DNA of 64,000 bases from Bugula neritina (Eukaryota > Animalia > Bryozoa), in the NCBI GenBank assembly GCA_964035545.1, contig OZ037765.1, positions 19,220,995 through 19,284,994 of the forward strand, in the 5' to 3' direction. The notes under the pieces are model-generated. The model saw only the letters and a program-made list of their open reading frames with translations, did not search any database and was not told the origin of the DNA. The position numbers and the translations under genes were made by a program. Position 1 is the stretch's first letter; the number at the start of each line of letters is the position of its first letter. Below, piece after piece: positions 5,566-41,143 of the stretch.

Positions 5566-8227
5566 TGTAAGATGATCTGATGTTGACAAGCTACAAGCTA
5601 GCAAGTACTAAAGCTACTGACAAGTGATAGCCGAAGGAAAGCCAACAAGGAACACTCTGGAGCTAGAGCTTAGCCTGGTAGGTTAACACTACATGGCGCA
5701 GTCGGCAGGATATTGAAGAGACAAGAGTTACAAAAGAGAGAAGTGTGTTGTTTGGAGTTCACTAGACTTCAGAGGTTTATATTTGAGAAAAAGAGTTGAG
5801 AGGCTTGTTGAGAAAGGTGGTGAGTGTTGACTTTTGAGCAATTTATAAATAATACTAATAGATTCAGAATAAGAGTGCCAGCGAAAGGAACTGAGAATTA
5901 AACTTTGAGAGACACGGATGCGCCCAGGGATTGGAACTGAGAGTACAGTGCATAATCACGAGATAGCTGCTTAAAATTAAATTGTTTTATTTACTCTATT
6001 AAAACTGCTTAAGTGTAGTATGGCTCATGAAGACATCAAATTAGACCTTAATGCTTTTCCTAAATTAAAGTTGGATGAAAGCAACATAACCAAATCTTGG
6101 AACTCATGGCTCATTCAATTTAAATTGAGTATAGAAGTTACTTCCCTTAATGCAGGGTTTGAAGTAGTAGGGGATGAACAGGTTAGCAGATTTAGACGTA
6201 GGAGAAAGCTTTTAGCTCTGTTAGGAGCTGTAGGGCCAGAAGGTCTTGATTCTTTACAGTCATTTGGTTTTGATTTAAATAATAACTCTGATGATGGATA
6301 TGAGTTAGCCTTAGACTTACTGCAATCTCACTATAATAGAGATGATACATTTTATGTGAAAACCATGAAGTTTGTCACTGTGACCCAAGCTTGTGGAGAA
6401 AACGAAATTGATTATTTGCTAGGAGTTGAGAAGCTAAGTAGAGCAATAAACTTTGGCAATAATGATGATGTTAGAATGGGATTTGCAGTTGCGCTAGCAG
6501 TTAATGGTCTAAGAAATGCAGGATTACGTAGACATTTGTTGCAGCATGCTAATCTAAGCTGGGAACAGCTGAAAAGGAAAAGTCGTGCTGCACATTTAAG
6601 TAAACTTTCCGAGGATGCTTTAAATGCAATAAACAATGAATGCATAGATGAACAGTCAATTGGTAGACTCACATATTCTTACCGAGCTAATGGTAGCTCA
6701 GAACACCGTAAGAAAAGAGATAAAGTTCTACATAGATTTAATTATGATAAGACAATTTCTATCAATAGAGACAACTCTTTTGCAAAGAAAAAAGAGGCAT
6801 GTCATTCATATCAACATTGTAGTTATAAATTGCAAAATGCTTACAAAAGTCATGGCAGATGCTTTAGATGTGACCATACAGGACATTATGTGAGAAACTG
6901 TCCTAAAACCCGTTGCTACATGTGCAAAGAATTTGGCCACATTGCTCAAGATTGTTCTGATAACAAAAGATACCATCACAAAAAGAGATATGTGGAACAA
7001 AGAGAAAACAGGATCGGAGTTATGGACTCCCTAAAATCAATGAAGTTTTCTACAAAGAGTGATGGGACTTATAATCACAATGTCAGTCCTAAAATAACAA
7101 GGACTTTATTAGTTAGTGGTAGACGTGTAGAATTCTTGCTAGATACTGGGTCTGAAGTTTCTACACTTACTGAGGCTACTGCAGAAAAGTTGAACATTAA
7201 ATTAAAGGAACCAGATAAGCATATTACAGGTGTTGATAAGTCTTTGGTGAATGTGCTAGGCAGAGCTAAGGTTTGCATTGGCTACTTCAACAGATTTGTG
7301 GATACCAAGATTTATGTATTGGCAAACTCTACCGAAAATTTGCTTGGTATAGCTGATATTACTAGGTTAAAATTGCTGGATCTACAATGTTGATATAAAA
7401 TGATACATGTGTGTTGTAGATATGGAAAAGTGTGTTGATGTTCACTGTAATGATATAAACACATTATTGCAGTGGAATACTAAGGAATGACAGGCAGAAG
7501 CAGTTACCACTAATGTTGTGTGCTCCCGTGAGTTTAACTCATGGAAGACTCTGTAAGCCGGCGAGAGAAGTCAGTTGTGACCCTCGCTGTTGCTTCACGG
7601 GGTGTGAGCCGAGTGTAGTCCATATGCAGACCCTCGACATCTCACTTTCAGATAATATGATAAATATGAGGTTTGACCTCAGTACTGACATGACATCAAC
7701 ATTGCCAATAATGTTGTCTGCTCCTGTGAGTTCTTTAGTTTAACTCATAGAAGACTCTGCAAGCTAGCAGGAGAAGTCAGCCTTGACCCTTGCTGCTACT
7801 TCACTTGCAGATAATATGATAAATGTCAAATTTGGCATTGTTCTTCCCAACAGTGCTAGCAATGGGAGGAGGTGGGATTCGACATCTAGGACTGAGCCAC
7901 TTTGAACCACTTCATAATAAGTTTAAGTATTCAAGGGCATTAGTTGAAAGCTAGTTTTGTTTGAATTGATTGCACTTCTCTTTTAAAAGAAAAGGGCATG
8001 TGGAATTATTAGCATCATGATGATGATAATATAGATATGTGTTCTGGCATTCTGAAAATGTGCTCTTGTGCCCTGCTTCTCTTTTGTAAGGAGGGAGCAT
8101 GTAAGATGATCTGATGTTGACAAGCTACAAGCTAGCAAGTACTAAAGCTACTGACAAGTGATAGCCGAAGGAAAGCCAACAAGGAACACTCTGGAGCTAG
8201 AGCTTAGCCTGGTAGGTTAACACTACA
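5566..8227 (+). mobile_element. Non-autonomous LTR retroelement (gag + protease only) inserted in the satellite
   Basis: Two 128 bp TG...CA LTRs (5566-5693, 8100-8227) that read identical; 4 bp TSD TATT; PBS TGGCGCAGTCGGCAGGAT (5694-5711) complementary to the 3' end of tRNA-Ser; purine tract AAGGAGGGAG before the 3' LTR. Confidence 0.95.
6020..7393 (+). CDS. Gag-aspartic protease polyprotein, 457 aa
   Basis: Two CCHC zinc knuckles (CFRCDHTGHYVRNC, CYMCKEFGHIAQDC) and a retropepsin LLDTGS motif; stop codon directly after the protease, with no RT, RNase H or integrase before the 3' LTR. Confidence 0.92.
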   Translation: MAHEDIKLDLNAFPKLKLDESNITKSWNSWLIQFKLSIEVTSLNAGFEVVGDEQVSRFRRRRKLLALLGAVGPEGLDSLQSFGFDLNNNSDDGYELALDLLQSHYNRDDTFYVKTMKFVTVTQACGENEIDYLLGVEKLSRAINFGNNDDVRMGFAVALAVNGLRNAGLRRHLLQHANLSWEQLKRKSRAAHLSKLSEDALNAINNECIDEQSIGRLTYSYRANGSSEHRKKRDKVLHRFNYDKTISINRDNSFAKKKEACHSYQHCSYKLQNAYKSHGRCFRCDHTGHYVRNCPKTRCYMCKEFGHIAQDCSDNKRYHHKKRYVEQRENRIGVMDSLKSMKFSTKSDGTYNHNVSPKITRTLLVSGRRVEFLLDTGSEVSTLTEATAEKLNIKLKEPDKHITGVDKSLVNVLGRAKVCIGYFNRFVDTKIYVLANSTENLLGIADITRLKLLDLQC

Positions 8228-11200
8228 TATTCATGTACGATCATTTGAAGTAGTATAAACTAAACATATACAAACTCTACACTCCTGATAGGTTTTAATT
8301 ATATGATGTTCATAATTATTTTGTGTGAAAGTTTGAGTTTGTCATTGACTAATAGGTATTATCAAAAATAAGAAATATATGCAGTGAGCTAAGCTGTGAA
8401 TCCTTTCCAGTCCAGCATTTTATGGTGTTTATGCAAGACTGGCTTAACTAAAACCAGCTAATAATTTCAATGTACATGAACATAGCATAAACTTTCATAA
8501 ACCAATAAGCTGCTGTGGTAGGTGAGAAAATTGAGTTTGCAAATTCTAGTAGTAAATTATGTATTCTCTTAGTTGGGTTTCTAATTAGCATCTCTACTAG
8601 GTGAGATTGCAATTGGCATCTCCACTAGGAGAGACTGCAATTGCCATCTCTCCTGGGCAGATTTGGCACAGTTGCTAGGAGCATTGCTAATCCAACTAGG
8701 GGAGATCGCAATTGGCATCTCCACTAGGAGAGATTGCAATTGCCATCTCCCCTAGGCAGATTTGGCATAGTTGCTAGGAGCATTGCTAATCCAACTAGGA
8801 GAGATTGCAATTGGCATCTCTAATAGTGTTGTAATTGGTTTTACTACAAAGATGAATGTGCATAGTGATTAGGTATATGGCCAATCTTACATGGAAAACC
8901 TTCAATTAGAAAAAAAAGCCAATTGTTACAGCTGCTGGTAGAATAACTAATTCCAAACAAAAAACTCCAGTTACAGTATTCATCAAAGCTATAACTATAT
9001 TAATTGCTATGCTCTATTCATGTATGATCATTTGAAGTAGTATAAACTAAACGTACAAACTCTACACTCCTGATAGGTTTCAATTATATGATGTTCATAA
9101 TTATTTTGTGTGAAAGTTTGAGGTTGTCATTGACTAATAGGTATTATCAAATATAATAAATATATGCAGTGAGCTAAGCTGTGAATCCTTTCCAGTCCAG
9201 CATTTTATGGTGTTTATGCAAGACTAGCACAACTAAAACCAGCTATTAATTTCAATTTACATGAACATTGCATAAACTTTCAAAAACCAATAAGCTGCTG
9301 TGGTAGGTGAGAAAATTGAGTTTGCAAATTATAAAATTATGTATTCTCTTAGTTGGGTTTCTAATTGGCATACTAGGGAAGATTGCAATTGGCATCTTCA
9401 CTAAGAGAGACTGCAATTGTCATCTCTCCTAGGCAAATTTGGCTTAGTTGCTAGGAGCATTGCTAATCCAACTAGGAGAGATTGCAATTGGCATCTCTAA
9501 TAGTGTTGTAATTGGTTTTACTACAAAGATGAATGTGCATAGTGATTAGGTATATGGCCAATCTTACATGGAAAACCTTCAATTAGAAAAAAAAGCCAAT
9601 TGTTACCGCTGCTGGTAGAATAACCAATTTCAAACAAAAAACTCCAGTTACAGTATTCATCAAAGCTATAACTATATTAATTGCTATGCTCTATTCATGT
9701 ATGATCAATTGAAGTAGTATAAACTAAACGTACAAACTCTACACTCCTGATAGGTTTTAATTATATGATGTTCATAATTATTTTGTGTGAAAGTTTGAGG
9801 TTGTCATTGACTAATAGGTATTATCAAAAATAATAAATATATGCAGTGAGCTAAGCTGTGAATCCTTTCCAGTCCAGCATTTTATGGTGTTTATGCAAGA
9901 CTAGCACAACTAAAACCAGCTATTAATTTCAATTTACATGAACATTGCATAAACTTTCAAAAACCAATAAGCTGCTGTGGTAGGTGAGAAAATTGAGTTT
10001 GCAAATTATAAAATTATGTATTATCTTAGTTGGGTTTCTAATTGGCATACTAGGGAAGATTGCAATTGGCATCTTCACTCAGAGAGACTGCAATTGTCAT
10101 CTCTCCTAGGCAAATTTGGCTTAGTTGCTAGGAGCATTGCTAATCCAACTAGGAGAGATTGCAATTGGCATCTCTAATAGTGTTGTAATTGGTTTTACTA
10201 CAAAGATGAATGTGCATAGTGATTAGGTATATGGCCAATCTTACATGGAAAACCTTCAATTAGAAAAAAAGCCAATTGTTACCACTGCTGGTAGAATAAC
10301 AAATTCCAAACAAAAAGCTCCAGTTACGTACAGTAATCATCTAAGCTACATCTATATTAATTACTATGCTCTATTCATGTACGATCATTTGAAGTAGTAT
10401 AAACTAAACATATACAAACTCTACACTCCTGATAGGCTTTAATTATATGATGTTCATAATTATTTTGTGTGAAAGTTTGAGGTTGTCATTGACTAATAGG
10501 TATTATCAAAAATAATAAATATATGCAGTGAGCTAAGCTGTGAATCCTTTCCAGTCCAGCATTTTATGGTGTTTATGCAAGACTAGCACAACTAAAACCA
10601 GCTATTAATTTCAATTTACATGAACATAGCATAAACTTTCATAAACCAATAAGCTGCTGTGGTATAGGTGAGAAAATTGAGTTTGCAATTTCTAGTAGTA
10701 AATTATGTATTCTCTTAGTTGGGTTTCTAATTGGCATCTCTACTAGGGGAGATTGCAATTGGCATCTCCACTAGGAGAGACTGCAATTTTCATCTCTCCT
10801 AGGCAGATTTGGCATAGTTGCTAGGAGCATTGCTAATTCAACTAGGGGAGATTGCAATTGGCATCTCTACTAGAGAGTATTGCAATTGGGTTTTCTACAA
10901 AGATGAATGTGCATAGTGATTAGGTATATGGCCAATCCTACTTGGAAAACCTTCAATTAGAAAAAAAGCCAATTGTTACCTCTCCTGGTAGAATAACCAA
11001 TTCCAAACAAAAAACTCCAGTTACGTACAGTAATCATCTAAGCTACATCTATATTAATTGCTATGCTCTATTCATGTATGAACATTTAAAGTTGTATATA
11101 AACTAAACGTACAAACTCTACACTCCTGATAGGTTTTAATTATAATATTTGGTAGCAGCAACAACTCGCACCGTCTAACGACCAACCATGATAGAATATT

Positions 11201-14835: not shown

Positions 14836-17800
14836 AAGAAAAAAAATATATATATATCTAATTCAAACATTGAATGACAATTTATAGACAGAAAAAAAAT
14901 TTATAAACTCACTTTTCATATATTTCTGATAGGCTGAGGTCATCTTCATCTGAGGCTTGAATTGCTATATCAGCACCAAGAGCATCTTTTAAACCAGCTT
15001 TACTTGCAGCATAAATCATCCTGTCTTTAACGCAGGCCTTGTCACCTGCCCTAAAATCAGGTAAACAATATTTAACAATGTGAGTTTTATAGGAAGTCAA
15101 CTTTGTTTAGATGTAATATTAGTTACTTGGATGTACAGCTTCATAAGAAATCAAAATCCTCACCAGGAAATGAACAAAAGTTTTCTTCTTTGAGATCTGT
15201 TTATTAAAAACTTAAAATCGAAAGCAGCATAACGAGCATGACCACCATTATTGGCGTCTCGCAATTCTTTCACCATTTCTTCATACTGAGGCAACTCAGT
15301 CGGTTCTTCAGGGTTGTAGCATGAATCTTCTAAATATACACAAAAATTGATACTACACTATTTAGGACAGAATTGGTTAAAACTTTTATCTAAAACTCAT
15401 CATGAACAGTCACAAAAAAGTACACCAACTTTAAAAACACTTACCATCTGGAGACCCTTTTGACAGAACTTTTACAACTTTATTATCTTCAATATGATAT
15501 ACAAAGTATGAATGTAGCTTTTTCATTTTCATCTCTTGAAACAGACGTATAGCTTTGTCATCCAAGGTAACACCTGAACTGCAAGTGGAAGGCTGTAAAA
15601 TACAATAATAATCATACTTGTACTCTAGGGGAAGGTGGGGTAAGTTGGGTCAAGGGGCAAGTTGGGTCAGGCCATTTTCTCAAAAACTGTAATGCTAGGA
15701 AACTAAATAGTTAGGTCAAGAAGTAAAGGTTAAACTAAAATAACTTCCTGCTACTACAACAACACTATCAAAAAAGAGGTGAGTGAAATATTAACTAATA
15801 TCAATATTTTTGCTTCATTTGACATTCTGTTCACCAAAACAGTAGACCAAAACTTTGTCATTAAGCATGAGGATAGAGTGCTAATGTTTTGTGTCATGAA
15901 TGCTTAAGTAGTTAGCTTATATTTAGTGGATTATAAAACTTTCTAAATTAATTTTTTCATGCAAAAATTACATGCTTTACAAAATTGCTGCCAATGGGGC
16001 AAGTTGGGTCAAAATTTTGGGGCTAGTTGGGTCAGTGGCCCAACTTGCCTCGAGTCACTAAACATAGTGTTAATGTAAATTTATTGTTGCAGATCATGAT
16101 ACTGGATAATCACTGCTCACATATATTCTTAGAGTCTGTAACTCTTGCTAAAGAATCAGGAGTTGTTCTACTCACCTTGCCACCACATACTTTACACCGA
16201 TTACAGTCTCTGGATAAAACTGTTTTCGGTCCAATGAAAACATTCTCCAACAAGGCAATGGATAACTTAATGATAATCTATCTGAACAGGAGCATAAAAA
16301 TGCAAGGCATTGGCGCCCTAACAGAGCGAGCATTTGGGCAAAACATGACTGTTGCTAATATAACATCGAGCTTTCGCTCATCTGGCATATTTCCATCAAA
16401 AGCAAGCATATTTACCGACGCCGACTATGTTTCAACCGATGCTACGGACAAACCTCAAAGAGTGATCAATGAGCAAGATGATCTAATTCAACTTAGCCAA
16501 GTTCATCTCAGCCATCTTTATTTCAGATTCCAATCTACAATCCAAGCACGCCTAGTACTTCTGGTTTATTGGCAGGGGCTACCTCTCAGGATACTTCTAC
16601 TTTACTGGTGGTAGCTACCTCTAAGCAGCCTATTACCAATCAAGATATTCTTCCCTTACCCAAAGCTGCTCCACGCAAAGATGGAGCACCCAGAAGAAAG
16701 CGGGTAAAGACCGCTATACTGACAGACACGCCAGAAAAAGAAAGAATCGAACACGAATGAGCAGACAAGGTGAATAAAGTAAAGGGACGACCTAAGGGTA
16801 TGCCTATACAGAAAGAGCCAGAATCCTGCAGTGAAGAAGATGAGCAGAACCATAGTTCCACTAGAGACAGACAGCGATTCACCATCTGAGGCGGAAGCAG
16901 AAGAACAGGATGTGGCAGATGTAGAAGAAGGGGCATTTGTGGTAACAAAATACAAAGGAAAACGTTCAACCATAGGTTTTGTTGGAATGGTGGTTGGCAA
17001 GGATGAAGGAGATTGGACTTTTACAAAAAGACTCCACAGGGCACATTCTCTAAGCCATCATAGCCAGACATATATGCAGTAGAGGCTGAGCAAATTGTTA
17101 GAGTGCTGGGGGCACCTGTCTCAACTGGAACAACTGTTCGAACTATAGGCTGTGTTAGTTTTGGCAACAAACTAGATGGCATGGGCTTTGAGTCGAGTTA
17201 GTTTTCTTGATGCCTTTATTAAATAAAAATAATAGCCCCAAGCAAATTTGGTTTACTTCTTCGTCCATTCCCAGAGTCTAAACTCAAATAATCTCACTAA
17301 CTTAAATGATGACTGGGGGCCTACGTTACAAACTTTATATGTTTTTCTCAAACTAATATGCTGTTAATCATTACTTAGACCTAATGAACATTAATAAACT
17401 GAATTTATTTCAGTGATATGTTAGATGCCATAGTAATGAAATAGCGACCCAACTTGCCCCATTTGTTTTTGGTGGTGACCCAACTTACCCCTCATGCGGG
17501 GTAAGTTGGGTCAGAAGAAAGGTTTTACGGTATTATCTGTAGCTGACTAAATGTTGGTGTTGCCTCAAAATAAAATTGGGCTATTGCAGATAACATATTA
17601 ATCTATCTTTTTGACAAACAGTTTGATATTTACATGCTTAGATCGGCCACAATATTAAAAAAACCAATTTTTGACCCAACTTACCCCGCCTTCCCCTATA
17701 GATATAGGCTAATAAAAGTAGCGAATTAATTTCAAAAACTAAGCAAGCTCAAAATTTTATTTGATATCACTACTACACTGGTGCATGGATACTATTTCAG

Positions 17801-21800: not shown

Positions 21801-22697
21801 TATTCAATCATTTACATGAAAAAAGACTGTGGTACGATTTAATATGTATATATTATATGGACTGGTGTGCTTAGAAATAAACTCAGCTCGACAAACTCTC
21901 CTGGTTAATCCTAGTTACTAGAAGAGGGGGTATTGCAGTGCTTCTCTTTGCATTGCATTGTAATATTTAGGTTTTTCTTATTTCCAACTTTAATTCAGTC
22001 AAATTAGCAAGCTGTTATAAATCAAAAGCTGAACTAATCAATAGAAATACAAAATTTAAGCAATTAATCAAGCAGCTAAATATATCAGCATAATATGCAT
22101 AAAAATGTTATTCAATGATGCTCGATGCTTTACAATATGCGATAGAATATACAATATATAAATTATAGGAGGAAGATTCATCAGTGAGCATTAAGTATTA
22201 GCATAGATTATCAAATCCTTTATTTGTATTCATGAAAAATTGAAGAGTTAACTGAGCAGAGGTTTTATTATAGGAAGTATAAATCTTTTAGGAAAAAGGT
22301 ATAACAAGGGGCTATCATAAGTAAACATTTCCAATGTACCAGTACAATTAAATACATAAATGGTAGCTCAGGTTGCAAATTTTTCATGTTTCTCTTATTT
22401 GATTCAGCTACTTGTTCGTCTCACAGTATATTCTCTTAGATTGTGTTACATGTCACTTAGTTTATGCAGCTCTGCTGTTTAAAAAACTTGTAATAGTTCA
22501 GAAGAGAAGGAGTGGAGTTTAAAAAAAACTTATAAAACTAGTTTTATAGTGTCACTTCTAATGACACATTGCAGCGTTTATAACTAAACAGCATTTATAA
22601 TTAAATTATTTTGTTAGTCCCATGTATAGCTATTTAATTACAATGCCAAGTAGCGGTAGCTGTGTGTCTTTCAGTGGTAGCAGTTTATTTTACTAGT

Positions 22698-25600
22698 TTA
22701 GGAGTCATCTCTCTTGTAGCCATTAAACCCAGGAAACAGGTAAAGCTTTCTCATGTGAGTTAAAGTATCCCAGGCTACAACCAACTGCCCTCCACTCTCT
22801 AGATTTCTATCTACACATAGTTTTCTTACTTTAGTCTGCACCTTGAAAATATTCAATAACTTTATGAAGGATAGACTTGTGCAATTAATGAATTGAAAGT
22901 CAAAAGTATTTTCAATATAACATTTCAATACTGGGTATTTCCTTAAAGTTCTATTGTAATATTTTTACTAAACCATAGTAACATCTATTAAATCAAATAA
23001 GACATGCATCTTTTCTATATTCATTTCATTTTAAATTAAAAAAAATCAGGCCTAATAACTGTTCTTGCAACATTTAAAAGAATAGTTTTAGTTTGAAACA
23101 GCAATTTTAGTTTGGCTGCACTCAAAGCTGACTTGACAGCCTTATGTCTGCTGAGCACCTTTATTATTCACAACCCTCTATATTTCATTCATTAGCCCAT
23201 GCTTTCAAATTCACACCCATCAATAAGAGAGGTATAGAACTTATCGAAACACGTTTAACATATAGAAGAGTGCAAGTTTAACCACTGCAGTAAGACACAC
23301 CAACCTGTTTGAATATAGTGTAGAGGTCATGGTGACAGGCATGTTTATACATGGAAGATACAAGAGCTCTAATCATTAGAGATCCATACTCAGAGTGTCT
23401 CTTTGATATGAATGCTGCAAGTAGATTATGTAAAGTAAAAATTATGCAGCTAAGAATTTGGTGTCATTTTAGAGTATAACTTTGTGTATTATAGAGAGTG
23501 TATTTCTTACATTCCATACTAGATTTCACTACTAGCAGGTCATCATAGTTCAGTCTATTCATAGCCTCAGCATCCTCTAATCTGCGAACTTTAGCAAATG
23601 GAGGTGAGATACATTCCATTTCCTTGTCTTGAGATTCTCCGATATCAAATCTGTCTATACCTCTATCACCAAAATCACTCCTCTCTGTAACACAAAACAG
23701 TCCACATAAAAAAGTGTTTTAATTAACTCTAAGTTATTAGTTGGCCTAGGATATTATAGAGCACATAGCAAGTAGTGAGTTGAGAATTGTCTTATCAATA
23801 CAAAACACCAACATTTAATATCTCCATCTACTCAAACAAAAAGCATTGCATCGTAGACATGGTAGAAACTTGTAACGCATTTAGATTACACTTTTTAGAC
23901 GTCCATTTACAATAGACTCTTATTAAAACAATCGCAATGCAACTCCAAAATGTTGCCCTCCGGAAGACTAACTAGTACACTGCTCCTATGGAGGAATGCA
24001 GTACCATGATATAAAGAGTTTTTATGCGAATGTGGTAATATCGGTTATTACATTAGCAAACTATGTTGTAGCCAGCATGTTATCGAAGCGTCTACTAATA
24101 AAAGCATACTGTGATTAATCAAATACCTTCATAACTAATAATATACAATGCTTGAGGGTGAAAATGCACCAGCAGTGTTATGAAAAAGTCTTTACCTCCA
24201 CTACACACTTCCAGTATAACAACTTTCGGTTTGCCAGCCATGCCTGAAAAGTTCAAAGGGGTCAGAAGGTCATAGACATCTGTTAGTTTGACTCTTTTCA
24301 GGTCTGTACCATAAATATGATTGTTCAACCCTCCATGAGTCATTATAACCAACACATGGCATCCCAGATCTTTGTGTTCCTCTTTCTTCACTTCAGTCTT
24401 TACAGCAGACAGCATCTCCTGCAAGCATTGAAAATGGATGACAGAAATTTTATTCAACTGTTGAAATATCTAGCAAAACTAATAAAAATAGCAATTGTAG
24501 AACTGATATATTTATTAAATCTCAACAGCTTAACAAAACTACAGGCCCACATAATGATAACTAAACTCTAAAAAATAGTAACTCATAAAACTATAAGGGT
24601 ACCTTAGCCTTCAGGTCTGTGTGTGTCACAACTTCAAACTTGAGAGCTTTCAACAGGGCAGACATATTCTCAACATCAACATTTGAACCTCTCCTACACA
24701 AATCTGGTCTCTTATCAAAGTTCATGTTGTTTACTATCAGAGCTCTACCTCTTTTCTTGGTCATATTAAACACCTGGACACCATACAGAAGTGCATGTTA
24801 TTGCTATGGAGGTGAAGCCATGCATTGAAATAATAACTAGTATGATAATACTCACTCACACAAGTTTATAGTCACTATCGCTGAAGGAACCCCTGATGGA
24901 AAGGGTTTATTAGTATGTGGCACAGGAAAAATTATGATTGGATGCTCTTCCTAACATAACCAATGGCCTTTATTAGAAATCAAACTTATGAACTTGCATT
25001 TAAGAACTCGGCACTCTAACTTCTAAACCATGGTTGCTCCCTGGTATGATTATACAACATAAAAATAAACATGATCACCTTGTCAGTGTTGGAGAACAGC
25101 TGCTTTATCTTTGAGTTACTGGTTGGACTTAGTCTGAGTCTGATCAACTTCATCTCTTTAACTTCCTGCTCATCAGGACACAGATTGTCATCATCATCAG
25201 AGAGATCACTGAGATCATCATTGGCTAATGCAGATGCAGCTCCCTGATCTGATTGGCTACAGCTTACAACTGTAAAGCACAAAAATCCGTCATCAAGCAA
25301 CATTATATAAACAAGTTACAATGACTATTAAACTGCTAATCACATAGAAATTCTTTTTTCTTTTCGACAAAACTTATTGAAGGCTGAGCACGTTCAAATT
25401 GATATGTTTGTTAACAGAAGATCACAGAAACCAGCCACATAAAAATTTACCAGAACACACTGATCTGTTTTGAGCTGCTCTAACTTTCAGTTCGTTCACA
25501 AACTCTTTTAATATGTCAGCTTCCCTTTCCGACAACGGCTGACCTGAAAGATGAAATATTTTAAAATCATTTGTCAGAATGTCATGTTTTGGCTTTTTGA

Positions 25601-28600
25601 ATGATAAAAAGAGATCGAAAAAACATAGTACTGCATGTATATGACACAAAAACCAACCAACAAAAAAATTACTCCTACTCTTGCAAGCATAATAATATTC
25701 TCAAATACCAAACTATGACATATGCAAACATACATGGGTAAAGAAGTGCACTGGAAATCTCCTCATCACTGCACAAGGTCGTTGAGTATCCATTACGAAA
25801 TTTGACTTCTTTTGGTGAATGTTTCAAGGAGCGAAGGCACCACTGTGGACTTAACAAGCTTTTGGGACACGCAAGTTCTAGCAGAAGGCAATGGGCGCAG
25901 AAACATGTAGTGACTGGTCTACTAGCTGGCCATGTTTTCAGAACATGTCTAAGGATGTTATTGTTGGCAGTAATGAGCTTCTCCCACATGCGACCTATGT
26001 TAGCAGCATCAGATGACACATGGAGTAACAGCTTCCTAGATTTATAGTCGTGCACCAGATGGGTGTAGATTCCATCATGGTACACATTGGCTCCATTTCT
26101 CCTGACTTTCATTACACTGCACTCATCAGGAAACAACTCCAACAAACCAACAGTCATCTGATGGTACACGTATTGTGGCAAAGAGAGACCATTGAACTGT
26201 GTCTCAACTTTGAGGAAAATTTCTTTTGGTGGAGAGTACGAAGTGGCATAAAAGTTCTTAGCAAAATATGGTACAATAAACCATGGTTCCTTTTGTTCAT
26301 CATGTATTGGACCATACAGCAAACAAAATGTCTGGAGTAAGCAGACAGCAATGTTGACATCTTTGAAATTGCTAAAAGATGTTTCTTTTGCAATCAAGTA
26401 AAAAAGAAGGCATTGCATCATCAAACCAGTGTCAGTAAAATGACCAACAGATTTATTAAAGTCCTGCTTTTCAACACGAATTCCAGACTTTGAATAGTAA
26501 GGCTGGAACTTGTCAAGTCGGCTCTGCCATATGTTAGGATCATGATGATACAGGACACATAGAAGTTTGGTTACTTCTGAAATTCTGTAGAATATGTATT
26601 GCCGGAGAGCGCTGATATCTTTATACCACAAAACTTTGCCACAGTCATGCATGTATGTGAGGATTATGTCTAGCTGACTTGACTCAATTTGCTGAATTTC
26701 TGCTTTTACATATTGCAGTATCTCATCAAAGGTGCTGTACACAGAGGGAATAGACAACACTTTTTCATTAACCTCTTCCCAGACCATAGGCAGAGGCTTG
26801 ACAAAGTTTTGACTACTTTTAAGAAGAGAACTTTTGATCAAGTCAAACACCTCATACTTATCATCTTTTCCCACCTCATAAATTTCCTCACTAGGAAAGA
26901 CACTCCCGGCTGATTTACTAAAATGTTTGATATTAGCAAATTCTCCACCTAACGCCTTCTCTTCGCTGATAATCTCTTCAAATAACTTATTTGAAGTTTC
27001 AAGAAAACTTGTTTGAAGCCTTTGAAATTCTTTGATTTGAAACTTGTCTTTATGAGTAAATATAAGTTTTGGTGGACCAAGGGTGGGAGTAGCCAGATAG
27101 AGATGGGACATGTAATCAAAGGCTAATCTTCTAACAGCTTCTCTGTGTGATGATTCGTTTGCAATGCTATCATACTGCTCCATGTTGACTACAATGACTG
27201 GTATACAATTTTGCCTTAGTGTTAGTTGATAGGTTATATGGTAGACCTCCTGGCCTCCCATATCAATGAGACGGAGCACTGTACCATCAACCTCAACCTC
27301 TTCCACATTAAACACCTTGGTTGTCTCATCTCTTACAGCATCTGATCCTCTGTTGGTCAGAACTCTCTTTCTGTCAGCGCTCTGTAATGTTCTTATTAGG
27401 CTTGTTTTTCCAGCCATTGTATTGCCCAGAATAGCTATAGTAGCAAATGGTAGGTTTCTACCAGCACCTTTAGCCAAGTCTGCATAATACTGTCTTGCGG
27501 AATCTACTCCCCTCTTGCATACTTCTAGTGGAGGAGATATAAGCGAATGGCAGTCAAATACATTCAGCTCATGAAGTTGAGTTAGCTGAAATATCTTGGG
27601 ATCTAAGGATGTCAAGGATTTATTGTAAGATATGTCCAGTTCTAGCAGACTATTCAATGTGTACACAGAAGATGGTAAACGGGTTATATTGTTTGCGGAT
27701 ACGTTGAGCTTCTTTAAATTCTGTAGACTCTGTATGCTGGCAAAAAAAAAATTCTCTGTACAGTCATGTATATAATGCAAGTTGCAGCATCTAGAAATGA
27801 TTTCGCAAAAGCTCAAAAACGCTAGTTTATAAATAAGTGCCTCTTTCATGCGCAACATCTACATATTGTGTAGGTATTGTGTTTTTCCATCCAAATATCT
27901 AAATGGTGTGATAAATCAAACTGTTCTAGAAACCTGGCTGAAAAATTAAAAAAAATTATCTCCTCTATAAAATATGGATCAACATCAACGATTACTGCTC
28001 GACAAGTAACCTGCTAATTCAATATTTCTAGAAGGTGTTTATCATTCTAACAACATATTTTTATTTTTATTCTGTAATTGCAAACAATAAAAATGATATT
28101 TAATTAATGACGATGTCTTGTGCAAATTTTGCCCAATTGATTTTAGAGAATATTATAAGTAAAATATTATATTTCTATAGACAAACGGCTAAGAACTAAA
28201 AATATTTGTTGTAGAACAATTATTATATTCACATATTATGTTGACAATATTGTTTTTGACGAACATTGGGTAAATAGTAAATAATGTTTTAAATTCATGT
28301 CCAAAGATAAAAATTAAATTGTTTAATAGTTTAGAAGATTAGCCACAAAATATTAATTGAAGCAGAAAAATAAACTAAAAGTAACTTGAAATTATTATGT
28401 ACCCGCTCATTGATTTGTATAAAGCACCCATCGTTATACATCCTACTTGCATATATGAACTATTATTCTCGGGTTCAGTCCAGATAGACAACCCCCCAGA
28501 TAGACAACCCCAGATGTTGCTATCAAATATGTGTGCAGATGATGTTCAAATATATTTGACTACTTTAAACTTTAAAATTAAATAGAAATAATGTAGAAAA

Positions 28601-31600
28601 ACAGTGTAAAAAAATTATATTATAATTATTATAATTTCAAAAAATCAGGCATTTTATGGATATGGCTTCAGTAAACTGCTAGAGCAACGGCTTCAAAGAA
28701 TCATATTATACATATCCATATAATGCCTGATCTTTTTCAATAATACAACATAATTTTTACACTATCTTTCTACATTATATCCATTTAATTCTACAGTTTA
28801 AAGTAGACAAATATATTTGAACATCATCTGCACACATACTTGATGGCAATATTTGGGGTTGTCTATCTGGGGGTCATCTAACTGAAATTTGGTTGTCTAA
28901 CTGGGGTTATCGATCAGAAATGACACCTTAAATTCTCTCCATATATTTTAGCATCACCAGTCAGGCATAGCAAATTTGAAGCTCAAGAAAACAGTAACAT
29001 ACAGAGATAAAAATTTACAAGATAAAAATAGGCTACTCTGGTCAATGGAAGAGCAGTGATGAGTTACAAGTGATTTTTAATAGAACATTGAATGAGTTAA
29101 AATCTCAATTGCAACAAGCTATTCTCAACTTGAGTGTTAACTGTAGCAACCTCTGTCATATATGCACATAGTTGCCTAATGCCACTAATGAAACTTGTAT
29201 AATCTTATGTGCTATACACACCTGTTTGGTAGAGCTGGAAGTTTACAAAAGCTCATGTTCAACTCTCGCAATGATAGTAAGGATGTGAATATATCGTCAG
29301 ATAGACCGTCAAATAAGTTATTCATTGCTATATTCAACACCTCAAGATTCTTCAGTGAAGATATGCTGTAATACAACGTACAGACATAAAAGCATGTCAT
29401 AACATTTAGAATAAATGCATAAATTGATAAAATGTTGTATGAAATCATCAACATGAGTTTTCACTATGTCCTGGTAGAAACTAGTAGGGTTTGAGCTGCT
29501 TGTAGATAGGTTGGAGAGAGAAGAGGTTAAGACAGAAGTATACACATGTATTAACATTTACATTTTTATATCCTAGCAAGTAAGTATCTTAAATGGAGAA
29601 GGTTTTATATATAGCCCTAAGTGTAGAAAATCATAGACTGAGGAAACTGATAGCAACCAGCATGTCAAAACAATTGAAGCTAAGTTGTTGAGGTTCGTAA
29701 TCAAATAGCTGTGAAGTCACAAGGGAATAACACACAAAGCAACAATTACATTAACAATATAGTTGGAGCTTTGGTGTGGTAGAACGCTAGTATGTTGACA
29801 GTGATACGAGAGAAGACAACTCTACTATACAAGACAGCAAGCTGGAAAAATGAAATAGTCAGTGAGTAGCGATGAGTGAAGGAGCCATTAGTGATACTTA
29901 GAAGAAGCGCAAGTATTATGAGACCATCTTCAACTTGAGTGTCAACTGTAAAAACCTTTGCTGTGTGTGCAGACAGTTGCTGAGTTACATATAAAATATT
30001 ATCATTAGTACAGTATAATTCTACATTATAATATAATACATACCTGTTTGGTAGAGTGGGCAGTTTGCAGTACTCCATGTTCAATTCTTTCAATGATAGT
30101 AAGGATGTGAATATATTGTCAGGTAGACCTCCACATAGGTTATTGTATGATATATTCAACACCTCAAGAGTCTTTAGCAAAGATATGCTGTAAAAAAACA
30201 TGCAGGTATGACATCATGTCATAGGGCATACAATTCAGTATAATATGTATGTGAGTTGATACTAAATCATATTATACAACATGACTACATAGACATAAAA
30301 TATATGAAAAAATTTTGTATCCATGAATAATCTGAGTTTCTTGATGACTATTAATATATAGGCTAGTACAGATCAACCCTTATACAACAGCAATGAGAAA
30401 AGAACTTTGACTGTACTATAAATAACGAGAAATAAACCACTCTTTCACAGAAAACAGGGTCATTCCATGCCAAATCAACCAAATTTTAGGATGTCCCACA
30501 CCTTTGCGTCTCAAAATTTGATCATATTTACACCAAATGAGCCTACGCATGTTATGAGTACTATTCTTGAATACTTCTGTCCGGCACAAAAACTTTTTGA
30601 AAAAATGACTACTTTTGTGAATAGTGGCTGGTCGTTATACATGTTTGTCTGTATGCCCCATTAAGCACTGTCACAGATACCCACTGAAATGGTCTTTCAG
30701 ACCTTTAGTAGATGTGACTTTTAGTTCTACAGGGATGTCTAGCACACTCTCCCTATTGTCAAGACAGTAGAAGATATTGGTTTAGTTGTCAAAAGTCGAC
30801 CCATGAGACAGTTTGTACCGGTTACATGGTTATCGATAGCAGATTAAATACCTGAATTTCCTAGCATGTCACAGTAAAAGTAGCAATTCTCCTAGTAACG
30901 ATGCTAATTACAATTTGCCTCAGAAATATGCCAAATACAATCTCTACTAACAGAATAGGCAATTTTGAACAAAAAGCTGCTGTTACAGTTTAATCATCAA
31001 AGCTATAACCATATTAATTGCTATTCCCAGTTCAAGTATAAACATAAGCAATATCCTAGATTAAATTTACAAATTCTACTCCTACTACATTTTAATCACA
31101 TGATGTTCATAATTAATGTGCAGTTCCAGTTGGTGTTTGAACAAAATCTGAGATGCAAAGCCTTGAGTCATTCGTTGAGTTTGTATGGAATGACCCACTA
31201 ACAAGTATTCAATACCCACAAGTTTCTCAATCGCCAACTATAACGGATGTGCTAAATCATGCACTATAATATCTAATAACATGAATACAACACTACCAGC
31301 ACTATGATGATATTATACCTGGTCCAGTGAGCATCACTCTCTACTCTACATAGTCTTAGGTGTGTGAGGTGAGGAAACAGGGCGTTGATATTTGGAGGAA
31401 ACTCATTGTTCAGTATAAGATGAGTAACTGTATGATGTCTACTAATATTATTGATATCTTCTATAGTGTAGGATGTGGTATCATTCCTCATCCACTCATT
31501 GTCAATGTCAGATATAGTAAATGTGTTAAACCACAGTCTGTACTTCTCTAGAAAATATGCACCAATTTGTATAATTTGCAACTTTGATATCAAACAATAG

Positions 31601-32514
31601 TAAAATAGTGAATAGAGTGACAGTCTCAATCCTATAAACAGTAGGTATTGCAGCATAATTAGAGAATTTACATATTCAAACCGGATTTTAAATTCAATTG
31701 TTCATTATTGATGGAAAATATTAGTTTATTAAACCAAAAATAATATGTTGATTGATCTCTGTAACTCAGTGGTCTTCAAAAGCTTCTAACTATCTATAAC
31801 TTATATACATAAGTAAACATAAGTAGCTTATATCTTTAGACTCCAGCATCAGAAAACTCATTCAACATACTTTGATTTCAGTACTTGTAATATTACTGAT
31901 ACACGTCCATATACAAAACTAGTGAAACTCTGCATAAATCATATAAGATTTAGAAACTTCAAGGGGCATCATCTAAGGCAAAATATGACTGTCAACGACA
32001 GAAAGCACCTGCTAATGATGACTGGCTAAAACTAAGACTTGCACTAATACAATGAAAGTTGACTAGCTTGACATGAGATATTGCAAAGCAATTACACCAT
32101 AGACATTCTTTCAACTAAATAATTAACAAAATACTTTTGGACTTCAGCTAAATTAGTGACAAAATCCAAATCTTAGTTTTTTTTTATATCTCTTACCAGC
32201 ATGGCTTTAATATTAGGTCTGAGCAGACTTAACAATAGGAATGACCTTCATTATTGTTCACTATCTAATTAAACTAATAGTGAATGCATATTTCTACTAT
32301 TGTAAGAAAACTGCTCAGACTACATACTAATTTTAAATACAGAAATAAAGTTATTACTGCTATTCAGACTTTCCATTTTTTCCACAACATGCAGCTACCG
32401 ATCACAGTATATATGCATTCATATGATTTACTAACTTGTAACAGACTGAGTTAGAGGCTCAGTTAGGTCTGGATTCACAGGTTGAGGTGAAGGTCGAGAC
32501 ACTGACTCACTCAT
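22698..32514 (-). CDS. LRR-Roc-COR (Roco GTPase)-caspase fusion protein, ~1234 aa, 12 coding exons (32436-32514, 31319-31547, 30044-30187, 29222-29365, 25734-27736, 25451-25543, 25079-25269, 24603-24773, 24196-24418, 23511-23684, 23305-23414, 22698-22841)
   Basis: All 11 introns are GT-AG with matching phases; total 3705 nt with no internal stop. LRRs (LKTLEVLNISYNNL etc.), Roc motifs GNTMAGKT / DMGGQ / THKD, COR region, caspase large subunit (RGRALIVNN, RRGSNVD, IMTHGG, GKPKVVILEVCSG) and small subunit (DLLVVKSS, SKRHSEYGS, KLYLFPG). The first coding exon is the least certain. Confidence 0.87.
28471..28927. mobile_element. Foldback MITE (~190 bp inverted arms) in a Roco-caspase intron
   Basis: CCAGATAGACAACCCC...GCAGATGATGTTCAAATATATTTG...ATCAGGCATT(T/A)TATGGATATG is mirrored as its reverse complement at ~28710-28875. 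Confidence 0.8.
30457..31196. mobile_element. Non-autonomous TIR element (superfamily unassigned) containing a diverged piece of the satellite monomer
   Basis: Left end GGGTCATTCCATGCCAAATCAAC; right end reverse complement GGGTCATTCCATACAAACTCAAC. No exact TSD (AACA vs ACTA). Confidence 0.7.
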
Positions 32515-36778: not shown

Positions 36779-39700
36779 TGTTGTAATATTTACACAGTTT
36801 ATGTAAACTTGGAGTTACCTTTTCTTGATGTTTTAGCTGATCAATTATTATTCTGTTTTTGTAAAAGATAGTCACTTCCTGTTTGGCAAACTGCAGTGCT
36901 TGATTAAAATAAACTGAAGATTAAAACTAATCCACTAATAATTGCTAGATAAATAGACATCTAAAGAATAAAACATGGTGGCAGCGTAATTTAATGGTTA
37001 GTTTAAAAGATGGAAGGCATTTCACCACCTGGACAATTGAATTTAAGGGCAGAAGATTTGTCAGGAGAATGGCGGCGTTGGATTAGGTCATTTGAGGATT
37101 ATTTGCTAGCAATAGACCTAACTGCTAACTCAAGAGCCGCAGAAAAAAGGAAATTAGCCTTATTCAGACATTGTGGTGGTGAAGATGTACGTGAAATTTA
37201 TTCTCAAATGGAATTTAATCTAGAGGTTAGTGGAGAAATTACTGAAATTGAGGAAGGGGTTGCTGGGAGAAAGCTAGAAGATGTAATTAGGCGTTTTCAT
37301 GAGTACTGTAATCCTCGCACTAGTATTGTGCTGAATAGATTTCAATTTCACAACAGTAGCCAAAGTGGAGATACAATAGATGTATACTTAATGAAATTGC
37401 GAAGGCTGGCGGAAGGCTGTGAATTTGGCAATCAAAGAGATTCATTGATAAGAGATAAACTGCTTTTTGGAATTGATGATTTTAATGAAAGAGAAAAATT
37501 AATGAAAGAGGTTGATGAAAAACTAAGTTTAGACTTTGTGATTAAGTCACTGAGAGTAGCTGAGAAATCTACAAGGCCTAAAGCGATAACGCTACCAGAC
37601 CCCAAACCCGAAGAAGTCAATGCAGTACAAAATGTTGATAATAGGAAGTCAAGAATTCCTTCTGAGGTTACTTATGATAAACGTTCCAAGAACCGATGTG
37701 AGCATTGTGGGAAAAACCATTACAAAAGTCAGAGATGTCCAGCTTATGGAACTAAATGTGCGAAATGCAATCAATTCAACCACTGGGCCAGAGTGTGTAG
37801 GAATTTGAATAAAGTCAATGAAGTACAGCCAGAAAAGGGTGACACAGATTTTTATTTAGGAGAGACACATCACATTAACTCCATAGGTTCTCAATCCTGG
37901 TACACCAATCTCAGAGTAAGCACCAACAAACACAAAGGACAAAGGATCAAATTTAAATTAGATACTGGTGCGTCTCTTAGTGTATGTGGTCCACATCATG
38001 TCTCAGGGGAGCTAATCTCAACTAGCAAAAAATTGTACGGCCCAGGGCAGACACTTTTGACATGTTTAGGAACAATAAAGTGCCAGATAACATCAAAGAA
38101 TGAGCGCATAAATGAAGACCTTTATGTTATTCAAGATCAAACCACACCATTGCTTAGCCGTAGTGCATGTGAGAAATTAAACCTCATCTCTGTGGATTCA
38201 TCTCAATGCCAAATAGAGAATGTGTGTGTTGATGAGAAGCTGTTCCAAGGATTGGGCAAAGTAAATACAGAGCATGTCATTACGTTGAAAGGAGATGCTA
38301 AACCATTTGCTATCCATGTTCCCAGACCCATACCTTTTCCTAGAAGAAAGTTAGCAGATGAAGCATTGATGAAAATGATTGAGGATGGAGTAATTGTTAA
38401 AGTTGATGAACCTACTCCATGGGTGGCACCTATGGTAGTAGTTCCTAAACCTGGCCAAAACAAGGTGAGAATTTGCACAGATTATACCGAGTTAAACAAG
38501 CATATTTTGAGAGAGTTCCATCCCATGGCAACAGTAGATAGCAGCTTAGCTCAATTAGGACAAGGACAAATTTTTTCCAAGATTGATGCAAACAGTGGTT
38601 TTTGGCAAATTCCTTTAAGCGAAGAATCTAGCAAACTAACAACGTTTCTGACTCATTCTGGACGATATCGCTATTTGCGACTGCCTCAAGGCCTATGCAG
38701 TGCTCCAGAAATTTTTGTTGCTGAAATGAACAATATTTTGAAGGATGTTGATGGTGTGGTTATACATATGGATGACATACTGGTTTTTGGTGAGAGCAAG
38801 GAGCAACATGACACAAGATTGCAAATAGTGTTGGAAAAACTTAAAGCTTCAGGCATTACGCTCAATAAAGACAAATGTAAATTTGGAGTACCATCTGTTA
38901 ATTTTCTTGGTTATGTCATAGATCAGTCTGGTATACATGTTGGCCCTCGAGTTCAAGGAATAGTAGATTTTCCTACTCCGAAAAATGTAACTTCAGTACG
39001 AAGTTTTCTTGGAATGGCCAACCAGTATGCTAAGTTTTCCGAGGAATTAGCTGCTGTGAGTGAACCAATTAGAATGCTGTTGAAGAAAGATGTTCCATGG
39101 CACTGGTCCAGCAAACAAGAAAACTCCTTCACGAGGATAAAAGAAATATTTCAAAATGCACCAGTTTTAGCAGTCTATGATGTAGACAAAGACACCATAA
39201 TCACAACAGATGCTAGCAATGCAGGTCTAGGAGCAACACTCTGTCAAATTCAACAGGATGGCTCTCGGCGCTTGATATCTGCTGCAAGTCGATCTTTAAC
39301 AGAGACCGAAAAGCGTTATGCAGCCATAGAAAAAGAAAGTTTAGCAGTCTGTTGGGCTATGGAAAAGTTTTCTCCATATATACTAGGTATGAAGAATGTG
39401 GTTATTGAAACTGATCACCGTCCACTAGTTACTTTGTTTGGGAATATCTTTCTAGACAGGCTTCCACCAAGAATTCAAGGGTTTAAACTTAGACTTCAAA
39501 GATTTCAGTATACTATCAGACATGTGAGGGGGTCTGGGGTTTGGTCTAAGAATGTTGCAGCTGATGCTCTCTCCAGGTATAACACTGCTGAAGCGAACGA
39601 GATTGATGCAGCAAGAGAAATGGAAATTGAACTTTATATTGATAACATCTACCAACATGGATCTGATAGCAGGTTGGAGCAGCTTCGATTAGAACAACAT

Positions 39701-41143
39701 GAAGATGAAATACTGTCAAAAGTAATCAAATTAGTAGAAAATGGATGGCCAGGGTATTTGTCCACTGAAGATGTCCTTCTGAAGCCCTATTTTGAAAGAA
39801 GATCTCTTTTAACAATAAACAAAGGATTCTTGACACTTGGCAATCGTTTGGTAATACCGTTAGCTCAAAGAGAACAGGTGTTGCAAGATATACATAGAGG
39901 ACACTTGGGCATTACAAAATGTCAAGCACGGGCTAGAGATGGCGTGTGGTGGCCTTCTATGTCAAAGGCTATTGAGGCTATGATCAGCAATTGTGCTGAA
40001 TGCAAAATCCATGCAGCTAAAATTACAGAGCCATTACGTCCTTCTGCAACTCCAGATAGACCTTGGCAACACCTTAGCACCGATTTGTTGACTTATAAAG
40101 GCCAAGTATATCTTCTGGTTATTGATAATTATTCAAGGTATCCTGAACTTGCCTTGCTGGGAAACTCTGACTTTTCTTCAAGTAAAGTAATAACACACCT
40201 AAAATCTATTTTTTCACGACATGGCATACCTGAAATACTATTGTCAGATAACGGCCCACAATATGCAAGTGCAGAATTTAAACATTTTTCTGTCGAGTAT
40301 GGATTTACCCATGTGACTAGCAGTCCACATTATCACAGAGCGAATGGAGCAGCTGAACGAGGAGTAAGGACCATCAAAAACATGCTTGCAAAAGAGAAAG
40401 ATCCTTATTTGGCTTTGTTAGCTTATAGATCCTCACCGCAGTTTAGCTCATACTCTCCAGCAGAATTGTTAATGGGTAGAAAATTGAGATCCACTGTACC
40501 CATCCATCCGGATAAGCTTAAACCTGAACTCCCTGACCATGACTTATTCAAAAGGAGCAACGATCAGTATAAAGAGAAAATGAAAGAAAATCATGACAAA
40601 AATCCTAAAGTGCGCCCCCTTTTGCCAGTAAATAAAGGAGACAATGTGATGGTGAGAGATATGCAAAGAGAAGGCTATGCTGCCTCTTCTTCAGACAATA
40701 TTACTCGTCGAACAAATGTCATGACTGACACTGGACCTTTAATACGTAACAGAGCTGATATAACTAATATCCCAACACGATGTTCTGAGCGAACCAGAAA
40801 AGTGCCACGCTACTTAACAGATTTTGATTGTACATAATTTATTATCCACGCCTGTAGTATAAGTTGCACTTGATTTAATTACTGTTGTCAAACCGTTTCT
40901 TTTGTGTGTTTTTTTTTGTTGTTGTAGCCTGAAACTAAAGAGGGGATGTTGTAATATTTACACAGTTTATGTAAACTTGGAGTTACCTTTTCTTGATGTT
41001 TTAGCTGATCAATTATTATTCTGTTTTTGTAAAAGATAGTCACTTCCTGTTTGGCAAACTGCAGTGCTTGATTAAAATAAACTGAAGATTAAAACTAATC
41101 CACTAATAATTGCTAGATAAATAGACATCTAAAGAATAAAACA
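36779..41143 (+). mobile_element. Full-length Ty3/Gypsy LTR retrotransposon (K02A2.6/Mag-like)
   Basis: 197 bp TG...CA LTRs (36779-36975, 40947-41143) that read identical; PBS TGGTGGCAGCG (36976-36986) complementary to the 3' end of tRNA-Leu; PPT AAAGAGGGGA (40937-40946). Confidence 0.96.
37010..40837 (+). CDS. Gag-Pol polyprotein, 1275 aa (Gag, Zn knuckle, protease, RT, RNase H, integrase)
   Basis: CAKCNQFNHWARVC; LDTGAS; LPQGL...IHMDD; TTDASNAGLG...EKE; HRGHLG...CAEC zinc-binding domain; integrase D, SDNG, AER. Domain order PR-RT-RH-IN. Confidence 0.96.
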   Translation: MEGISPPGQLNLRAEDLSGEWRRWIRSFEDYLLAIDLTANSRAAEKRKLALFRHCGGEDVREIYSQMEFNLEVSGEITEIEEGVAGRKLEDVIRRFHEYCNPRTSIVLNRFQFHNSSQSGDTIDVYLMKLRRLAEGCEFGNQRDSLIRDKLLFGIDDFNEREKLMKEVDEKLSLDFVIKSLRVAEKSTRPKAITLPDPKPEEVNAVQNVDNRKSRIPSEVTYDKRSKNRCEHCGKNHYKSQRCPAYGTKCAKCNQFNHWARVCRNLNKVNEVQPEKGDTDFYLGETHHINSIGSQSWYTNLRVSTNKHKGQRIKFKLDTGASLSVCGPHHVSGELISTSKKLYGPGQTLLTCLGTIKCQITSKNERINEDLYVIQDQTTPLLSRSACEKLNLISVDSSQCQIENVCVDEKLFQGLGKVNTEHVITLKGDAKPFAIHVPRPIPFPRRKLADEALMKMIEDGVIVKVDEPTPWVAPMVVVPKPGQNKVRICTDYTELNKHILREFHPMATVDSSLAQLGQGQIFSKIDANSGFWQIPLSEESSKLTTFLTHSGRYRYLRLPQGLCSAPEIFVAEMNNILKDVDGVVIHMDDILVFGESKEQHDTRLQIVLEKLKASGITLNKDKCKFGVPSVNFLGYVIDQSGIHVGPRVQGIVDFPTPKNVTSVRSFLGMANQYAKFSEELAAVSEPIRMLLKKDVPWHWSSKQENSFTRIKEIFQNAPVLAVYDVDKDTIITTDASNAGLGATLCQIQQDGSRRLISAASRSLTETEKRYAAIEKESLAVCWAMEKFSPYILGMKNVVIETDHRPLVTLFGNIFLDRLPPRIQGFKLRLQRFQYTIRHVRGSGVWSKNVAADALSRYNTAEANEIDAAREMEIELYIDNIYQHGSDSRLEQLRLEQHEDEILSKVIKLVENGWPGYLSTEDVLLKPYFERRSLLTINKGFLTLGNRLVIPLAQREQVLQDIHRGHLGITKCQARARDGVWWPSMSKAIEAMISNCAECKIHAAKITEPLRPSATPDRPWQHLSTDLLTYKGQVYLLVIDNYSRYPELALLGNSDFSSSKVITHLKSIFSRHGIPEILLSDNGPQYASAEFKHFSVEYGFTHVTSSPHYHRANGAAERGVRTIKNMLAKEKDPYLALLAYRSSPQFSSYSPAELLMGRKLRSTVPIHPDKLKPELPDHDLFKRSNDQYKEKMKENHDKNPKVRPLLPVNKGDNVMVRDMQREGYAASSSDNITRRTNVMTDTGPLIRNRADITNIPTRCSERTRKVPRYLTDFDCT

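Follow-up and report, generated by a model that had tools for sequence, protein, structure and literature searches.

Can a single animal gene encode a ligand sensor, a GTPase switch and a caspase in one chain? The question is raised by a locus of the bryozoan Bugula neritina, contained in a 64,000-nucleotide stretch of contig OZ037765.1 (hereafter the window), where a sequence-only reading had seen an LRR-Roc-COR GTPase fused to a complete caspase. The gene is on the minus strand, from 32514 to 22698, and has 12 exons and 11 introns, all of them GT-AG, with matching phases and no stop inside any exon. The earlier count of 12 in-frame exons and about 1234 aa proved exact, the product being 1234 aa with the exon-2 acceptor at 31547; this acceptor is preferred because conservation with the paralog L062 begins there. 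A 1262-aa model, using the exon-2 acceptor AG at 31631, was rejected, as L062 is conserved only from 31547. An ortholog, L063, was found as a metagenome contig that is 96% identical to the window over the compared stretch, and contigs from four presumed-RNA runs (X1-X4, from four studies) were aligned to window positions 22600-28000. The domain order in the 1234-aa frame is LRR, Roc, COR, linker and complete caspase, with the following features:

32436..32514, minus strand: putative exon 1, with ATG at 32514, 26 aa, Pro/Ser-rich, in frame with its GT donor
31319..31547, minus strand: exon 2, N-terminal cap and degenerate LRR, 59% identity to L062 from the acceptor onward
30044..30187, minus strand: exon 3, a 144-nt phase-2/2 cassette of two LRRs, 98% aa in ortholog L063
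29222..29365, minus strand: exon 4, a second 144-nt cassette of two LRRs (GT-AG frame, Pfam)
25734..27736, minus strand: exon 5, 2003 nt, about three LRRs, Roc GTPase, COR-A, COR-B and a Cys-rich end (Pfam, AF2, Foldseek)
27400..27426, minus strand: Roc P-loop GNTMAGKTS, a motif located within exon 5
25451..25543, minus strand: exon 6, post-COR linker of 31 codons, spliced in contigs to exons 5 and 7
25079..25269, minus strand: exon 7, acidic Asp-rich linker and conserved pre-caspase segment (joint 25269|25451 in four runs; Watersipora matches)
24603..24773, minus strand: exon 8, start of the caspase large subunit (Peptidase_C14, E 6e-10), with S1-pocket Arg 24695 by motif position
24196..24418, minus strand: exon 9, catalytic His (THG, 24337) and Cys (EVCSG, 24205) (Peptidase_C14, E 1e-11; alignment with solved caspases)
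23511..23684, minus strand: exon 10, linker between the subunits, containing several Asp, and the first part of the small subunit (joint 23684|24196 in X1 and X2)
23305..23414, minus strand: exon 11, small subunit with the second S1 Arg 23400 (Peptidase_C14 positions 171-207)
22698..22841, minus strand: exon 12, caspase C-terminus and TAA stop (frame, contig joints)

A paralog match was sought for exon 1 and none was found. The three COR-to-caspase joins on which the proposed fusion hinged hold to the letter: the introns 25734|25543 (190 nt, phase 1), 25451|25269 (181 nt, phase 1) and 25079|24773 (305 nt, phase 0) have exact coordinates and matching phases, with no stop between them. Read through past its donor, exon 5 meets a stop at 25677-25675, and the linker encoded by exons 6 and 7 comprises about 94 aa. 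Domain and structure searches were run exon by exon, and the full-length context was taken from natural Watersipora and amphioxus proteins.

Exon 5 matches the Roc profile PF08477 with 31.1 bits against a cut-off of 27, and none of the G motifs is disrupted: the P-loop reads GNTMAGKTS, the switch-I Thr lies within DETTK (27330), and G3 and G4 read DMGG (27264) and THKD (27057). The Pfam match of COR-A in the same exon is weak (17.9 bits, below the cut-off). The AF2 model of exon 5 has a pLDDT of 91 and a pTM of 0.88, and Foldseek searches with it returned LRRK1, CtRoco and LRRK2 (E 1e-24 to 1e-17, about 650-750 columns), together with Roc-COR and isolated COR structures (3dpu, 3dpt E 3e-10). 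Because the model matches COR structures, COR is considered real despite its weak Pfam score. With a Roc carrying G1, G3 and G4 and, in the model, a COR directly after it, the predicted protein is a Roco, most likely of the MFHAS1-like group. Its NTPase is a Ras-like Roc domain and no NACHT or NB-ARC ATPase, which places the protein outside the NLR/STAND class.

The caspase part is distributed over exons 8-12. Exons 8, 9 and 11 cover positions 1-49, 47-130 and 171-207 of the Peptidase_C14 profile, and both the large and the small subunit are found in one chain. Aligned with caspase-3/6/7 and CED-3, the gene's THG and VCSG supply the His-Cys dyad, and both S1-pocket Arg are retained. The caspase had been called complete, and in both subunits, His, Cys and S1 Arg it is; the description does not extend to the active-site pentapeptide, where the Gln of QACxG is Glu and the motif reads EVCSG. 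EVCSG lacks the conserved Gln and Arg of QACRG, so the enzyme may have an altered activity or specificity. Compared with ortholog L063, exon 9 displays 0 replacement and 5 silent changes and exons 8-11 together 4 replacement and 15 silent changes, small numbers that would fit purifying selection. A death-fold (CARD/DED) Pfam match was sought in exons 5 and 7-12 and none was found, the 31-codon exon 6 being outside the scan. The protein belongs to the Rocos and to the caspase family and is neither an NLR nor a CARD/DED initiator caspase, but it probably acts like those two combined. A single-sequence AF2 model of the Watersipora linker-caspase piece has a pLDDT of only 32.

The continuity of the gene was examined in the contigs, where the removal of introns at GT-AG sites fits an mRNA origin of the runs. 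Every one of the four runs lists the 6|7 joint. The contigs reproduce 8|9 and 9|10 to the letter, and joints 10|11 and 11|12 are present with 1-2 differing letters, which probably derive from paralogs. Join 7|8 is absent among the listed contig joints of the four presumed-RNA runs (window 22600-28000), a listing that left out 12 further joints; its donor and acceptor are conserved in 16/16 copies of caspase class A (defined below), and in the Watersipora RefSeq proteins P0196 and P0197 the exon-8 match follows the exon-7 match without a break. All 27 of the 27 checked differing letters in the contigs are L063 alleles and the nearest other locus compared is 79% identical in nucleotides; therefore the spliced COR-linker message is that of this gene's ortholog. 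The gene is real and is expressed through L063. The single-gene fusion of Roco and caspase is supported by the splicing of the ortholog and by the intact motifs. A Roco part ending at the stop 25675, which had been named as the outcome that would undo the fusion, is not borne out, since exon 5 runs on into exon 6 in one contig each of X1, X3 and X4. One contig of X2 has intron 5 unspliced.

Two introns contain repeats of their own. Intron 7 (24870-25050) carries a SINE-like repeat that is transcribed and present in many copies, contig depth over it being very high in the presumed-RNA runs, and intron 4 (28470-28930) carries pieces of a short inverted-repeat element, part of which is missing from or inverted in ortholog L063.

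The family to which the gene belongs is large in Bugula. The census on the 216 Mb genome was built from match coordinates plus 62 short loci, so that its counts are lower bounds. Searching with the Roc-COR exon gave 156 candidates, 66 of them scored, and caspase exons gave 135 matches; a genome-wide Pfam Roc search was dominated by small GTPases. At least 77 loci were obtained: three queries together gave 77 Roc-COR exons, each followed on its own strand by a caspase exon no more than 16 kb away, and for 72 of them the distance is 5 kb or less. Family members are mostly clustered on contigs 1 and 6; the window copy is solitary, among transposons. An exon-wise NACHT search of the genome, which split genes could escape, gave a single partial match.

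By exon 9, two caspase classes can be distinguished: class A, 88-96% identical to the window, and class B, 44-49% identical and with the motif HACSG. Roc-COR exons are about equally similar within and between the classes (30 closest copies), and in a quick exon-5 tree the classes are intermixed, monophyly of B being rejected (AU p=5.9e-8). This mixing on the Roc-COR tree shows that family members have swapped effector modules relative to their sensor-switch modules, through recombination or gene conversion. The class-A active-site motif is E-[VAT]-C-S-G, and most sampled class-A copies retain the Cys. Paralogs of this class without Cys have EASSG (L058 and L059) or EAASG (L057) and are probable pseudo-caspases, as judged from the motif.

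The genome holds 615 candidates for the 144-nt LRR cassette, of which 150 were scored; two cassettes were found in the window copy and nine or more in some paralogs. All 25 compared cassettes have AG/GT flanks and phase 2. Across these 25, pN is 0.31 at concave-face positions versus 0.09 elsewhere (permutation p=0.0004), and pS is 0.34 and 0.20, respectively; at six concave sites pN reaches 0.46 versus a pS of 0.38. A concave pN close to pS would fit relaxed or diversifying selection, as read from these proportions and not from a formal test. The suggestion that such proteins are receptors for immunity or cell death, a function that is inferred, gains support from the variable LRR cassettes, the at least 77 loci and the near absence of NACHT matches.

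Among named sequences, the nearest relatives are RefSeq proteins of Watersipora subatra. The full layout is found in four of them (XP_067947674.1, XP_067948342.1, XP_067935178.1 and XP_067932893.1), and the active-site motif in this species is mostly QACSG. The full-length member P0082 (XP_067948342.1) has no canonical GxxxxGKT P-loop by pattern search. Further contigs carry the same exon order. In Branchiostoma, about 11 proteins have LRR, Roc, COR and caspase in identical order (for example XP_002614028.1 / C3XQ16); unlike the Bugula copy, the amphioxus proteins retain QACRG, and GT4, OTU or death effectors are also used. The Branchiostoma Rocos with GT4 glycosyltransferase, OTU or death effectors (P0217-P0240) are intermixed on the tree with caspase-bearing ones. 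In both the Roc-COR and the caspase tree, computed with P0082 misaligned and P0143 omitted, the bryozoan rows form one clade and the amphioxus rows another, the branching between them being not settled. The bryozoan Roc-COR rows are also a clade of their own apart from presumably prokaryotic rows, the deep branches being poorly settled. Another sensor-caspase fusion, with LRRC8/pannexin-like, LRR and caspase parts, is represented by P0243, P0244 and P0245, one of which is from the octocoral Paramuricea clavata.

The same layout is known elsewhere, in Watersipora and amphioxus gene models and in a bacterial catalogue (PMC8195603). The sequence-only reading had stated that no characterised animal protein was known to it with this architecture and had asked for a survey of relatives. 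The statement holds in the searchable papers, and the Bugula loci, at least 77, are all paired with a caspase, but with the gene models of the two other animals and the bacterial systems the layout is not without precedent. No literature on the bryozoan family or functional test of the layout was found, most subscription journals being outside coverage. A review of Rocos describes no caspase group (PMC6337361). In bacteria, caspase is among at least 24 effectors placed behind LRR-AP-GTPase-COR by Kaur et al. 2021 (PMC8195603). These systems have fast-evolving LRRs, Roc, COR, a variable C-terminal effector, which can be a caspase, and several paralogs per genome, and the window family displays the corresponding traits, namely variable LRRs, Roc, COR, an exchangeable effector and multiple copies. 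The bacterial systems are predicted only, whereas the bryozoan caspase is animal-type, with large and small subunits, and its gene has introns.

Other known systems share part of the design. Amphioxus 'LRRs-caspase' proteins have been proposed as direct shortcuts from recognition to apoptosis by Zhang et al. 2008 (PMC2575513); the sensor-to-apoptosis idea is the same, but no Roc, COR or GTPase was named and they may not be the same models. In NCBI the relatives from Watersipora and amphioxus bear the name of MFHAS1 homologs, MFHAS1/MASL1 being an LRR-Roc-COR protein of Roco group 1; MFHAS1 carries no effector domain, and vertebrates have just one such gene. LRRK1/LRRK2 and CtRoco have the same LRR-Roc-COR fold at 13-15% identity, with a kinase or no effector instead of a caspase, and Roco-TIR proteins are known from Aplysia (PMC9334734). 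In brown algal ROCOs, which are candidate immune receptors, phase-2 LRR exons are shuffled under diversifying selection (PMC11378527); cassette exons of this phase, variable in number and on the concave face, recall those of Bugula (PMC11378527, PMC3341825), but the algal exons are of 72 nt with one LRR versus 144 nt with two, and the proteins mostly have no effector, a few having peptidase IPR009003. NLR inflammasomes, Apaf-1/caspase-9 and the PIDDosome would be alike in combining a repeat sensor, an NTPase switch and a proximity-activated caspase; unlike the window protein, they use a STAND ATPase, not a GTPase, a death-fold adaptor and separate chains.

Taken on balance, we lean towards a one-chain cytoplasmic sensor-switch-protease, an innate immune or cell-death receptor with an NLR-like job, whose Roc-COR dimer would activate the caspase. 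We favor it because of the ortholog splicing, the Roco fold, the 77/77 pairing, the concave-face variation and the conserved caspase exons, and because of the one partial NACHT match, the full-length Watersipora and amphioxus models, the COR dimerisation and nucleotide cycle of CtRoco (PMC6337361) and the activation of caspases by forced dimerisation (PMC2575513). The LRR concave face would bind a foreign or altered-self ligand, and binding would shift the nucleotide state of Roc. COR-mediated dimerisation would then bring two tethered caspase domains together across the linker, and the pair might activate as initiator caspases do, without a CARD/DED adaptor, cleaving their own Asp-rich linkers and afterwards death or inflammatory substrates. 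The activation had been described as GTPase-driven, and Roc is indeed intact; the sign may be the opposite, in that bacterial CtRoco dimerises when nucleotide-free and is monomeric with GTP (PMC6337361). If the Bugula protein behaved likewise, its GTP-bound form would be a monomeric off state, switched on by hydrolysis or nucleotide release. It counts against this mechanism that COR dimerisation need not juxtapose the C-termini, since LRRK1/2 dimer geometries vary; the EVCSG motif, the concave pN close to pS and the unlisted 7|8 joint also weigh on the other side. A broader and tentative proposal, which we hold to be possible and not yet probable, is that cheilostome-type bryozoans largely swapped NLRs for one-chain Roco-caspases, with GTPase-gated dimerisation, shuffled LRR cassettes and exchanged active, variant and dead caspases.

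Different readings of the same data have to be weighed against the one-chain receptor. It is very improbable that the model is misjoined, or that the Roco stops at 25675 and the caspase is a gene of its own beside it: the unspliced intron 5 of one X2 contig and the unlisted 7|8 joint would agree with this, but the ortholog contigs are spliced 5-6-7, splice sites are conserved in 16/16 copies, every Roc-COR exon is paired with a caspase and the Watersipora and amphioxus proteins are continuous. Bryozoans are colonial and their zooids are recycled, and a variable LRR surface suits any recognition task, which would agree with a family role in colony allorecognition or in programmed zooid degeneration (the brown-body cycle), rather than in microbial sensing; comparable families are interpreted as anti-invader in bacteria, in brown algae and in amphioxus, which is solitary, and we consider this role improbable.

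The remaining two readings accept a single gene and differ in what the domains do. A real receptor whose class-A caspase is weak or regulatory, a cFLIP-like partner or scaffold that signals with class-B members or other caspases, is unlikely, yet it deserves the most attention among these alternatives. Class A has E-[VAT]-C-S-G versus HACSG in class B and mostly QACSG in Watersipora, some class-A copies lost the Cys, and near-identical Roc-COR modules common to both classes could heterodimerise; on the other side, His, Cys and both S1 Arg are retained, exon 9 has 0 replacement changes against the ortholog and the Cys is present in most sampled class-A copies. An active protease could also be switched on by higher-order clustering or membrane recruitment, Roc-COR being a localiser or timer and not a dimeriser. 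Rab proteins recruit LRRK2 to membranes, where higher oligomers form (PMC6337361), and the long acidic linker could uncouple the caspase from COR, but the exons are without a visible Rab-binding ARM/ANK domain or membrane anchor and COR-B is present, so that there is little likelihood in our view of activation by this route.

If the dimerisation mechanism is true, an animal caspase would be activated without a STAND ATPase or a death-fold adaptor, and a protease readout would become available for the disputed active, dimeric nucleotide state of Roc-COR, which bears on LRRK2. It would also lend support to the view that Rocos are immune receptors in bacteria, brown algae, amphioxus and bryozoans alike. 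The window copy is a handy test case, with two LRR cassettes only, an expressed ortholog and intact motifs.

The surroundings of the gene contain several mobile elements and repeats. A Gypsy-type LTR retrotransposon at 37007-40834 on the plus strand has an unbroken frame of 1276 aa that includes RT, RNase H and integrase, and a 470-aa gag-protease frame (zinc knuckle, aspartyl protease) of a different retroelement is located at 5981-7390, also plus. Fragments of a DDE_1 (pogo-like) transposase are at 16027-17079 (plus), and a nested 99/28-bp repeat, satellite-like, recurs at least 6 times in 1-10800, twice at a spacing of 1468 bp. Small assembly contigs (C27, C42, C66, C101 and others) gave small-GTPase matches with many in-frame TAA/TAG, a composition which suggests ciliate-code contaminants in the assembly.
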